A DNA stretch of 64,000 nucleotides from Bugula neritina (GCA_964035545.1 OZ037769.1:2170001-2234000); one strand, 5' to 3'. Shown: positions 17,736 through 64,000, numbered from the stretch's first letter. Notes: generated by a model not told the origin, from the letters alone. A program made the numbers and translations.

Positions 17736-20700
17736 TTACTTGAAATTTGCATAATCAGAGAAATTTTCCCCAAACTCTCTCAGTAGATCATAGAGTTCCA
17801 CGTAGCTCTCCTGTAAATAAAATTCCAGTTCAAAGCATTTTATCTATTCTTTTGCAAACTAGCTGATACGAAACAATTTGTGCGTTCAAGAAAAAGATCA
17901 GACTAACTGTTAAACATATCAGACTGTAAAAATTAGAATCATTGCTAAATGTTTGACGTTTGCATGAAAGAAGTTATAGTTGGAGTTTATAACTTTTTTC
18001 AGCAAAGTTTTGTACATGATTTCTTACCAGTGTGGTGACAAACTGAGGACGTCTGAGTCTGGCCATCATAACTGTACTGTACAGATCAACTTCCTGTTCA
18101 GCTTTCATCTTCTCAATTGCATTGTGGGAACAGATGAACATTCCACACTTGGCACCTCCATCACTTCATGTGAATATATATATACATATTGAAATCTGTT
18201 GGTTTAACTATGCAACTTGATGTATCTAGGCAAATATGCATACTTGAAGAATAAACAGATAATGCATTAAAAGTAAACAGAGTGTGCATTTCTTACATAA
18301 GGTCTTCATTTCATCAAAAGTATAAGTTTGTTATATCTTACAAGCCTTAAGCTAAGCATACAGAGAAATGTTGAACACGTATAATATATTATTGTGTACA
18401 TAATCTACACCAACATTGCAAAATAATTTATCAAGGGCACCTTACACTCTGAAAAGTAATGCATTACTATGCGTCATTATAAAAAAATATTTTAAAAACC
18501 TGGTTCAAAACTATATGCAGTTTTCATGAAAAATATTCCTGACTGTTTCCTAAACAACTCCAGTTAACTTATTTAGTCTCTAAACTGAACTCACAGACTT
18601 GTCACACAGATGTTGTGGTTTCCTGTCTTCTGCTGAAGCTTCTCAAGCATTTCCAGGAAGCGGAGTGTCTCGGCATTTGAAGTTTCATCTTCTCTACTCC
18701 AGTTTGTCTTTTGGAGAACATAAACGTTCCTTGACTGAAACCACACCAAAAACTATTGCATTGAAACAATATGTTAATAAAATGCATACCAAATAAAATG
18801 TCAACAATTTATCATCAAGGTTTATATTTTGTAAATTGGAATAAAACTGTACATTTCACATTATATAAAATTTAATAGTTTATGTTAGTTAAAAAGGCAC
18901 AAAACATATGTAAATTGAATAATTTTCAATGCTAACTCACAAAAACTTCTTATAGTTCAAACTATAATAAACAGGGAGAGTGCAAGATGCCAAAATAAAA
19001 ACTCACACTCTGGCTCTTGGTCACATGTAAAGCAATGCTTGTTATTTTCTCTGTTGTCTCTGTAGTGAGTCTGACAACCACAAAATCTCCAAAGGTCAAG
19101 GGCATCTCGTCAGTAGTTGATGGATAAAACAGCTCATTATCCTTTGAACCAATATAATATGCATGTATGTATGAAAATATAGTGAATAGTGCTCTTTGTC
19201 ACTAAATAACACAAATTTTCAGTTGTGTTTATCAGTAAACTAGCTGTTAGAATATAAAGCTACTGACTGGACTGTATACTTAAATGGAATAGTTTTTTTT
19301 ACTTCAAACAACAATATCCTTTGAAAGAAAAAAGTAAACTATAGCACAAGCAGCTGTTTTTTATATATGATGCATATAAATAATACGAGTATATTACGAA
19401 GATATTTAATTAGTTTAAAGCAAATGTTCCATTTGAAGTTTTAAATAGAATATGTACACTAGAACATACTTTACAAGGATCCAGTTGAATAATCACGAAG
19501 ACTCTGTACTCCTCAATCATCTGCCAGAAGTCAGTCATAGTGTTGGCGAGAGGTAGCTGAGTGGCAATGAACTGGTTCTTCTTTCTGTAAGCCTGAAGTT
19601 ATCAAGAGATGTCCATTTCAAAAGTTATTGAAAAATACTTAAAGATACAGGAAATGGTCTTTCAACAATTTGTTATCGATTTACATGGGTTTAGGAGTTT
19701 AAAAAACTGATCAAATCAAGCTAAGACAGAGTGCAAAACAAACAGTCTTGAAAGTATGTGAAACAACTTACATTAACCATCACAGCATTGATGTAGCCAT
19801 TACCAGATGATATCACAGGTCTCAGAGATTTCTCTTTATCTACAAACAGTCTCTAAAAGTTAGACTAACTATTTCAGATGGTTCTTGACATTTCAAATGT
19901 TACCGGGTTAGAGAGCATAAAGGATTAGTGGGAATTGTGTTAGTATAGGATACTATGAAAGAGCTGAACATTATCTAAATATATTTGACAATACATACCT
20001 GTTGCTGAAGGTGCAGATGGTGGTAGCACACTCATGCTCCTGTTCTTATTACTATTTTCTGGTTTTCTCCCCTCGTCAACATCTAGCCCATGGTCACTGA
20101 CATATCTCCCAATGCGCTAAGACAATATTTGAGACAAGATATTAAGCATTGGCTACAAGTTTCTATCAAAACATGTTATTTACCAGTCAGAGCAAGAGCA
20201 AAAGAAATATACAAAAAAATTGCAACTATAACTATTAAAAGTAGATTCAACTTAAATAATTTTCATCACATTTTTTCCTAAAATTATAAATGTAGCAATA
20301 TACTATATGACAGTAATTGTCTATCCACACAATATACTCTAGGTTACTGAATTTTAATCACCAAGTTTAAATATTTTTGTTTAAACAATAAACTGATTAT
20401 AAACTAACCTTTATAGTGACCAGTGCAAAACACCTATTTCACTTTATAAAAAGTTACTTACCATGTGAAAGATTTTTATTTTAAAAACTTCCCTAGTTTC
20501 TTTTATAAAAATAGCCAATAATAGCTTCTAATATAGCTTGCTAAACTCAAGCCTCCTAAAAGTTTTTATCAACAATTACTGACATTTTTAAAACGATCTA
20601 CAAGAAAAAGTTTTTAAATAAAACACAAATTGTAAAGTTTGATAACAAATTTACGTAAACTTACAAAGAACTCCTCATCAATCTCTGCAGTAGCCATATT

Positions 20701-62900: not shown

Positions 62901-64000
62901 TCAGAAACTGATATTAACACAGTCTTAGAGCTCTGCTAATGAATGAAACAGCAGATTAGCTGTGTTAGCATTTTCAATTAAATATACTTACACACTTACG
63001 TTATGTGAGTAGCTAGACTATAACCTCAGCATCCATCATTTTCACAAAAAAGCATTCTCATAAAAATATAAGTATAATTATGTTAAATAGACAGAGTAAA
63101 TTTGTAGCATCAAAATGATCTGTGATATAGCATGTGCACTTAACTATACTTTGAAAAGTTTGTGCTACATTATGTTCAAGGGACTGTGAATGCTTTACAT
63201 AGTTTAATGTCAACAGCTATAAATTGAACATGACAGCCAGCATAACAAATGATTGATGGAACTTATATCATAGTTGCCAAATCAGCTTGCTCATGCAGTA
63301 ACCAAAACCACAAACATGCTTTGAAGTTAATTTTTCTCAAAATTTTTAAAGAAAGGAAATTTTTAACTTTTTTCTAGAACTGCTAATCTGCATGTGTGCT
63401 TATGCCAAAATATTGATCTTAGACAAAATGGAACTCGTACTAGCAATAGTCTTCACACAAACCTTAATTTTTTACTAATTTTATGTGTGCTTGTTTTATA
63501 TATCATGGAGACTACAGCTCGCCCATCTCGTAGGAAACAACTTTAAAATACAAATGTCCCCAAAGGGACTTGCGAAAAGCCTCTATTAATTCTTAACTTT
63601 CAATGATATTTTGAATTTTTGAGTATTATTCTTGTTCAACAACAAAAACATTAGTCAAGCTTAGGTTGAAGCTGAACATAATTACACACGGTCATGAATG
63701 TATCAGTATCATAATAAAGTCTTGGTCTGTATGCGTGACTGTTTAGTTTAGTTTATAGAGTTAAAAATATAATAGCTATAAGTGTATCCTATATATCACT
63801 TAATACTCAATAGATAGGTAAACATACGCAGTCCTTGTTGGGTGACAATAGATTTCCTCACAGATTCAGATAAATTTCCATTCCTCTGTATCAACCAGAC
63901 TTCAGCTGATACACCAACATTACCATCTCTGTATATAGTTGTATTAGTAGATGTAGAGCTACTTAGAATTGTCTTATCATCTATATTCAGTTTGTATCTG
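53963..64000 (-). CDS. FN3-repeat / Sushi single-pass receptor with Tyr-motif tail; phosphatase-less paralogue of the RPTP ectodomain (5' part beyond the window)
   Basis: Exons: >64000-63828, 62273-62158, 62028-61860, 60799-60693, 60601-60412, 60058-59949, 59026-58843, 58390-58305, 58018-57799, 57470-57367, 57128-56948, 56820-56721, 55808-55556, 55222-55171. The 13 complete ones have lengths identical to RPTP exons 16-28. Then a Sushi exon 54807-54604 and a terminal exon 54327-53963 (TM VIGLSVGVSSGVLILVTITMTVIL, KKRWR, Tyr-rich tail, TAA). Frame is intact throughout. Confidence 0.88.
54604..54807 (-). other. Sushi/CCP domain exon (phase 1-1)
   Basis: YCSAPPVVENA...GTTALYSCEEGFYITGQPEIVC...WKGGIPTC shows the four-Cys plus Trp CCP consensus. 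Confidence 0.9.
59817..59886. repeat. Perfect 70-bp spacerless palindrome
   Basis: cctagtacaaaaatttatagcaatcttgctgcatg|catgcagcaagattgctataaatttttgtactagg. Confidence 0.97.
61002..61807. mobile_element. 806-bp insertion with TA (or GTA) target duplication carrying a (CTCACTTAGCTA)n array at 61079-61340
   Basis: The paralogous intron (32631-32650) reads tatttatggTAgtaaagcaa uninterrupted; here it reads tatttatggTA[cttgtagcg...gaagctacag]TAgtaaagcaa. Confidence 0.75.
62540..63584. repeat. Long imperfect inverted repeat (arms 62540-62885 and 63209-63584)
   Basis: The arms are reverse complements (e.g. catgtttgtggttttggttactgcatg vs catgcagtaaccaaaaccacaaacatg); one homologous copy lies at 33256-33867. 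Confidence 0.85.

Follow-up and report, generated by a model that had tools for sequence, protein, structure and literature searches.

A tandem receptor array in Bugula neritina with related ectodomains and either a tandem tyrosine phosphatase or a multi-tyrosine tail

The window analyzed here (the whole stretch, 64,000 nucleotides) comes from the bryozoan Bugula neritina (GCA_964035545.1 OZ037769.1:2170001-2234000; G000:C5:2170001-2234000 in the coordinates used below). It contains gene A, which encodes a receptor protein tyrosine phosphatase (RPTP; PTP without the receptor part), and, upstream of it, the 3′ part of gene B, a paralogue that ends in a short tail with five tyrosine motifs. An earlier note on this DNA had described A and B as a pair. 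The two are indeed intact and in tandem, but a 130-kb upstream extension places them in a six-gene array in the order A (PTP), B (tail), C (tail), D (tail), E (PTP), and F (PTP). The locus is therefore a tandem array, not a pair, with three phosphatase genes (A, E, and F) and three tail genes (B, C, and D). Exon models were built from genomic sequence, homology searches were run exon by exon or via database proteins, and exons were joined for frame checks and distances. Both A and B lie on the minus strand, every splice site is AG/GT, and both frames are open. The features in the window are as follows.

17736-51525, minus strand: gene A, receptor tyrosine phosphatase; 46 exons, 2,057 amino acids, open frame, stop at 17736
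51450-51525, minus strand: gene A exon 1, signal-peptide-like; the same exon begins B, C, and D
43358-48564, minus strand: gene A exons 2 and 3 (48307-48564 and 43358-43585), F-type-lectin-like domain of the galactose-binding fold, without the fucose motif
26221-41799, minus strand: gene A exons 4 to 26, about 11 fibronectin type III (FN3)-like repeats; two exons per repeat, phases 1-0-1; fn3 below the cutoff for single exons
25561-25813, minus strand: gene A exon 27, juxtamembrane FN3-like domain with an RKKR/SS furin-type site; PF23144 (E = 7.6e-9), PF18861 (E = 4.6e-5)
24962-25013, minus strand: gene A exon 28 (DGTVL), 52 nt; last exon in common with B
24649-24748, minus strand: gene A transmembrane (TM) exon
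20665-23614, minus strand: gene A first phosphatase domain (D1), exons 32 to 39; PF00102, active-site motifs and Q-loop present
17736-20116, minus strand: gene A second phosphatase domain (D2), exons 40 to 46; catalytic Cys absent, predicted inactive
53963-64000, minus strand: 3′ part of gene B; whole gene of 24 exons, 1,225 amino acids, open frame
56721-64000, minus strand: gene B FN3 exons corresponding to A exons 15 to 26; exons 17 to 21 and 25 exchanged with A, exons 22, 24, and 26 B specific
55556-55808, minus strand: gene B equivalent of exon 27, RKKR/SS; DNA 96.8% identical to A
55171-55222, minus strand: gene B DGTVL exon, joined to the Sushi exon in RNA contigs
54604-54807, minus strand: gene B Sushi exon; PF00084 (E = 1.7e-9)
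53963-54327, minus strand: gene B TM and 90-amino-acid tail exon; no charged TM residue, five Tyr motifs

Gene B extends past the window to its own signal-peptide exon at G000:C5:2240389 and is intact up to that exon. In the window, 14 of its exons match exons 15 to 28 of A, exon 15 being cut by the window end. The 13 complete common exons have identical lengths in the two genes (116, 169, 107, 190, 110, 184, 86, 220, 104, 181, 100, 253, and 52 nt), and RKKRSS sits in exon 27 of both, in agreement with the earlier note, which had reported two same-strand, frame-intact genes with at least 14 common ectodomain exons. The split that it placed after the 52-nt DGTVL exon, from which A continues into TM, D1, and D2 and B into Sushi, TM, and tail, is borne out by the exon models and by the PF00102 and PF00084 matches. 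Its proposal of one ectodomain for both genes holds in part. The FN3 exons of A and B are alike (83% protein identity), but exons 22, 24, and 26 reach just 64 to 68%, and upstream of the window B is without A's lectin-like exons 2 and 3 and exons 5 to 8.

The tyrosine motifs of the B tail are YEDI, YAEV, YESM, YEKV, and YQNM. B, C, and D showed neither a canonical immunoreceptor tyrosine-based activation motif (ITAM) nor an inhibitory one (ITIM) nor a charged TM residue, but only relaxed YxxV/M pairs spaced 12 to 13 apart. By the known preferences of Src homology 2 (SH2) domains, such tail sites suit Src/Nck, PI3K, and Grb2, and these preferences lean toward an activating role.

Gene A has the features of a classical receptor PTP: a TM segment and a D1 with the phosphotyrosine-loop Tyr, WPD, HC(X)5R, and Q-loop motifs, from which activity is predicted. 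The signature motif is intact and spans the junction of exons 37 and 38, and the solved structures nearest to D1-D2 are those of PTPRS, RPTP-alpha, and LAR. At the other end of the protein, the profile of exon 2 matched structures in the Protein Data Bank, namely, FBP32 (E = 2.4e-6) and 1k12 (E = 0.002), over the first half of the domain only; the FBP32 match indicates homology of the A head to the F-type fold, and the PF22633 match of the lectin-like exons is weak. F-type lectins bind fucose through a motif of His, RxD, and R/K, in that order. In A, the His position is I/S in the alignment, and no RxD is found past the VNVFT strand. The lectin-like exons are present in A, C, D, E, F, and a further phosphatase gene, G, and are missing from B of this haplotype. 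FN3 copy number varies between paralogues, and because exon phases are symmetric, FN3 units can be gained or lost in frame. Exon 27 is 94 to 98% identical across A, B, C, D, F, and G.

Introns of gene A hold repeats and an insert. About 15 copies of a 44-nt unit, made up of the exon 39 acceptor and first codons, occupy window positions 20797 to 21486 in the intron before exon 39; a second B. neritina assembly (GCA_010799875.2) has two copies only (L050:10929-10973). A 1.78-kb hexamer repeat (window 29857-31631) abuts the exon 20 acceptor. Intron 2 holds a 4-kb mobile-element-like insert with inverted ends (window 44099-48270), whose open reading frame pieces gave no Pfam match, and an 86% identical copy lies in the opposite orientation inside gene D (G000:C5:2261416-2265056).

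The remaining members of the array differ in their state of preservation. Gene C is of the tail type, with 990 amino acids and an open frame. Gene D, also of the tail type, has a TAG four codons past the TM segment (G000:C5:2254432-2254790, L013); since the tail behind this stop is 97% identical to that of C, the stop is probably recent or else a sequencing error. Gene E is a divergent PTP gene with D1 only: exon 40 ends in a stop, and D2 exons 41 to 45 are lost (G000:C5:2275100-2275600, L015). Its D1 is 93% identical to that of F, a PTP gene with D1-D2, and its ectodomain is about 50% identical. Gene E is therefore a chimera, and G has the reverse mix, with an E-like head and an A-like stalk. 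The D1 P-loops of E, F, and G read HCSTG or HCSKG rather than HCSAG, and the second Gln of the Q-loop is substituted; their activity may differ from that of A. Lectin exon identity is 77% between A and C and 84% between A and D, and because C and D keep the lectin, the part most likely to bind a ligand, and B does not, A with C or D would be better candidates for a common ligand than A with B. A single gene with alternative 3′ ends is ruled out, as each gene owns a signal-peptide exon and an ectodomain.

The two kinds of end also occur together elsewhere. Gene G is followed by tail gene H in a second couple at 8.5 Mb on C5, 6.3 Mb away; in H, FN3 exon 25 directly precedes the TM-tail exon. Gene H and the clusters on C1, on C3, and at 1.3 Mb on C5 are known from exon coordinates and short loci only. 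On C1, about 20 or more genes form a family whose members end in the run RKKR exon, Sushi, TM, and tail; YEEV-, YEKV-, and YxN-type sites persist among them at just 25 to 30% identity, and Watersipora XP_067942675 has the same domain order as the tail genes. Given the C1 family and the Watersipora counterpart, the Sushi-TM-tail end is of older origin, and a recent origin of the B tail from a broken RPTP is rejected. The juxtamembrane exon of the C1 tail genes is 89 to 98% identical to nine exons at 3.96 to 4.22 Mb, each of which precedes a WPD exon by 4 to 13 kb; the phosphatase/tail layout thus recurs on C1. Coordinates suggest more mixed clusters at 1.3 Mb on C5 and at 7.6 to 8.1 Mb on C3, with counts that are lower bounds. 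A related Sushi-TM gene (L044, G000:C5:470539-473727) has a longer tail with nine tyrosines, including ITAM-like and ITIM-like matches. A search for full-length relatives of the lectin domain returned the query itself only.

In the second assembly, where orthology was based on intron synteny and type-specific exons, L050 is the orthologue of A, an A-like 5′ end follows each of two B-type genes (L048 and L049), and there are more tail genes. The order of B and then A is preserved between both B. neritina assemblies, though their introns are just 75 to 85% alike. The D1/D2 domains of the A orthologue are 93 to 95% identical (amino acid identity of 85% for the ectodomain and 95% for D1), and the best relatives of exon 27 are B. 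neritina NCBI proteins at 95% identity. One B-type gene of the second assembly retains both lectin exons, and the lectin loss in B is therefore peculiar to this haplotype.

Reads from two runs of one sample, presumed to be RNA, were aligned to gene B and gave deep exon coverage and almost no intron coverage. RNA contigs splice the DGTVL exon to the Sushi exon (joint 54807-55171, canonical ends), which argues against an assignment of the Sushi and TM exons to another transcript. Of 18 listed sites in the contig of the TM exon, 14 agree with the second assembly's B-type allele, and the loose ends of contigs at exons common to both genes are identical to A-type exon 26 at every base. As A-type exon 26 ends and the B-type junction of exon 28 with Sushi occur in one sample, both lineages are transcribed in one bulk sample. 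Further contig forms join exon 25 to Sushi or exon 25 to the TM-tail exon, and the latter form agrees with the layout of gene H.

Exons of the two types have not evolved independently. The synonymous difference of exon 27 among A, B, C, D, and F is 0.08 to 0.10, and that of exons 26 and 28 is 0.5 to 0.74 in most pairs. In the quartet A, A′, B, and B′, exons 17 to 21, 25, and 27 cluster by genome (39 sites versus 5), and exons 22, 24, 26, and 28 cluster by gene type (72 sites versus 1), a contrast with a Fisher p of 2e-24 in which sites are not independent. From this grouping it follows that A and B swapped exons after the lineages split, and exchange is ongoing. The earlier comparison of the locus with paired receptors gains from this result, as vertebrate paired receptors show such exchange. 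Lectin exons are not grouped by signaling type: at the DNA level, those of A are about as close to the tail gene D (89% identity) as to the presumed orthologue of A (88%). The D1 WPD exon (window 21836-21984) and D2 exon 45 (18028-18163) are 93 to 96% identical among A, F, and G, with neighbors at 30 to 70%, and the WPD exon identity between A and G is 88%; this pattern reflects exon-limited conversion within the phosphatase domains. The ratio of nonsynonymous to synonymous change (dN/dS; pairwise Nei-Gojobori, with values blurred by recombination), which had been proposed as a check on the ectodomains, is near neutral in lectin exon 3 (1.02; range, 0.59 to 1.76) and indicates purifying selection (overall, 0.17 to 0.46) on FN3 exons 19 to 27 (0.17 to 0.43), D1, Sushi (0.34), and the tail (0.46).

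The neighbors of the array in the window are ordinary. They are a gene for a carnitine/choline acyltransferase (PF00755; 1-3805, plus strand) and a gene for an AP-3 beta-like adaptin (PF01602; 7275-15266, minus strand), which has a splice-junction tandem repeat (12115-12489) comparable to those of gene A.

The earlier note regarded such a pairing as undescribed, but a close analogue has been published. In the Biomphalaria LG5R and SudRes1 resistance regions, fucolectin/EGF receptors occur in clusters and have either a small cytosolic part or a tandem PTP (PMC13712769, subgroups 1B and 1C; PMC12297450), which gives a lophotrochozoan precedent for one ectodomain both with and without a phosphatase. 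The relevant passages of these reports describe clustered single-pass receptors with a galactose-binding/fucolectin head and the same two alternatives inside the cell, as in Bugula, and present the clusters as recent paralogues of high diversity tied to parasite resistance (PMC13712769; PMC12297450). The stalk of the scavenger-F-like 1B/1C receptors is described there as EGF/Tie2-like, with no Sushi, unlike the FN3 stalk of Bugula, and those passages mention neither Tyr motifs nor exon exchange between types nor a paired-receptor model.

With Siglec-11/16, Siglec-5/14, and CEACAM, the array shares adjacent genes, ectodomains kept closely similar by gene conversion, differing intracellular ends, and circulating nonfunctional alleles; in Siglec-11/16, conversion between partners is a hallmark (PMC5701461). 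Vertebrate paired receptors, however, recruit SHP1/2 through ITIMs and activate through a charged TM segment or ITAM, whereas Bugula has an intrinsic enzyme and a tail with neither canonical motif. An inhibitory ITIM member opposite an activating ITAM or charged-TM member was not found among B, C, and D, and for this reason we do not file the array among the paired-receptor families, yet it may work like them. A shared ligand and same-cell expression have been demonstrated for the vertebrate receptors, and the likeness of Bugula to them is one of gene structure and exon exchange.

The allorecognition systems of other colonial invertebrates, Botryllus FF/FcoR (PMC12582321) and Hydractinia Alr (PMC9546547), are also described as clustered, recombining, and variable in copy number, with tyrosine-motif tails; FcoR has Sushi domains, and Alr has an FN3-like juxtamembrane fold. 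In the portions of these reports that describe the receptors, heads are Ig based, motifs are canonical ITIM, hemITAM, or ITAM, and no phosphatase-bearing members appear; the likeness is one of layout, no homology having been tested for or found. The uroplakins UPK2/3, derived from PTPRQ by phosphatase loss (PMC5242461), are likewise short-tailed TM proteins that lack a phosphatase but retain the juxtamembrane FN3-like domain of an RPTP, and tunicates hold both forms. That split was ancient and one-off, without continuing exchange and with a single FN3, unlike the Bugula array. SUSD1 was an atlas look-alike (score, 0.84) and serves as a lead only. Its Sushi domains precede its FN3 domains, whereas Sushi follows FN3 in the Bugula tail genes. 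As in classical D1-D2 RPTPs (LAR/PTPRS, RPTP-alpha, and R2B), there are an active-site D1, an inactive D2, an FN3 stalk, and an RxKR site. The N-terminal Ig of subtypes R2A (LAR) and R2B and the MAM of R2B are absent, the lectin-like head being followed directly by FN3 exons, and the tandem expansion is lineage specific. Literature searches found no report of an RPTP paired-receptor system or of Bugula phosphatases, and in the library searched there was none on allorecognition or immune receptor genes of bryozoans.

Judged from gene structure and sequence comparison, the best explanation would be a tandem family of cell surface recognition receptors that draw their ectodomain exons from a common pool (a lectin-like head, a variable FN3 stalk, and a furin-site juxtamembrane domain) and carry two long-separate intracellular ends, either a tandem phosphatase or a (Sushi)-TM segment with a multi-tyrosine docking tail. 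Starting from the observed gene structure, transcription, persistence, and exchange, we infer the ligand, polarity, and substrate as follows. Related ligands, possibly foreign glycans or non-self cell surfaces, would engage both types, and clustered tail receptors would be phosphorylated by Src-family kinases. The tail would then recruit SH2 proteins through YxN (Grb2-type), YxxM (PI3K-type), and acidic YEDI/YEEV (Src/Nck-type) sites. The phosphatase type would reduce phosphotyrosine at the same contact, with the ratio of the two setting a threshold, which would amount to the logic of paired immune receptors with the enzyme built in. In our judgment, there is an even chance that a threshold is set in this way, with SH2 proteins docking on tail receptors once kinases have phosphorylated them and the signal being damped by phosphatase receptors of related specificity. 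A more ambitious and rather unlikely proposal is that recognition of non-self or of colonies in bryozoans relies on a genome-wide system of paired receptors whose inhibitory, phosphatase-bearing partner directly dephosphorylates the activating tail, with exon exchange matching specificities.

Several observations weigh against functional pairing. The lectin head is gone from B of this haplotype, the tails of B, C, and D have no canonical ITAM or ITIM, and the Watersipora tail-type protein was without a close RPTP partner among the matches. No exon had a pairwise dN/dS significantly above 1, and positive selection is not supported. Coexpression is at the level of a bulk sample, in which the RPTP side is marked by an ectodomain exon specific to A rather than by a D1 exon. 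Further, D1 exon 37 and D2 exon 45 are homogenized between A and F (proportions of synonymous differences, 0.10 and 0.03, versus 0.5 to 0.85 in neighbors), and shorter exons escape more (exon length versus A-B synonymous distance, Spearman −0.46, p = 0.04); exchange may therefore be mechanical, a by-product of tandem position that need not reflect a shared ligand. If so, tandem phase-symmetric exons would convert or recombine while similar, diverged short exons would escape, and the genes would be independent adhesion or recognition receptors without pairing. This explanation is possible, if on the unlikely side. It would also suit the strongest homogenization in the juxtamembrane exon rather than the head, and the lectin loss of B, the stop of D, and the D2 loss of E, which resemble birth-and-death turnover. 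It sits poorly, however, with the mixing of both ends in separate clusters with unrelated ectodomain pools (2.2 Mb and 8.5 Mb on C5 and 2.8 to 4.2 Mb on C1) and with an order of B and then A that has been held across assemblies despite the divergence of introns.

The near-identical juxtamembrane domain in both types would equally be expected if tail genes were partners or decoys of the phosphatases, heterodimerizing with the RPTP or competing for ligand, and their tails served it directly as substrate or scaffold. The small-residue, GxxxG-like TM segment of B would favor such contacts, and the tail-less D could serve as a pure decoy, but the large and old C1 tail family with its own conserved motifs suits autonomous signaling, and we regard this role as improbable. 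Some RPTPs, including CD45 and RPTP-alpha, activate Src-family kinases by removing an inhibitory phosphate. The two types could thus form one activating module in which the RPTP activates these kinases (or is switched off by ligand-driven dimerization) and the tail receptor is the kinase substrate; the nearest solved structures of D1-D2, RPTP-alpha among them, are in keeping with this, and acidic phosphotyrosine sites would suit Src kinases, but we hold this arrangement to be quite improbable. The idea that B is the other haplotype of A, or a damaged copy of it, deserves next to no credence. The locus is highly polymorphic, and in run X3 (probably DNA) a B intron occurs in two forms, with 0 and 32 differences per 420 bases (∼7%), at similar depth. 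This intron is, however, single copy in the assembly with a second form of its own in the reads, most A and B introns do not align, and B is open, spliced, under purifying selection, and found in the second assembly, where both types stand in the same order. Two forms at similar depth and a single assembly copy fit a strongly heterozygous locus, and the reads, the single-copy intron, and the second assembly refute both a haplotype artifact and a pseudogene. None of the refuting conditions that the earlier note had set out was borne out.

Under the reading that we prefer, a family of recognition receptors with one exon pool and two signaling ends, the array provides named, expressed, and highly variable candidate genes for bryozoan allorecognition or immunity. 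If the genome-wide proposal is true, bryozoan allorecognition would gain its first candidate molecular basis, and the signaling design would be one undescribed for paired receptors. If the pairing is functional, it would show that exchanging a phosphatase for a tyrosine tail on a single pool of exons can produce paired-receptor logic, and a mechanism would be offered for the snail resistance clusters with the same two ends.

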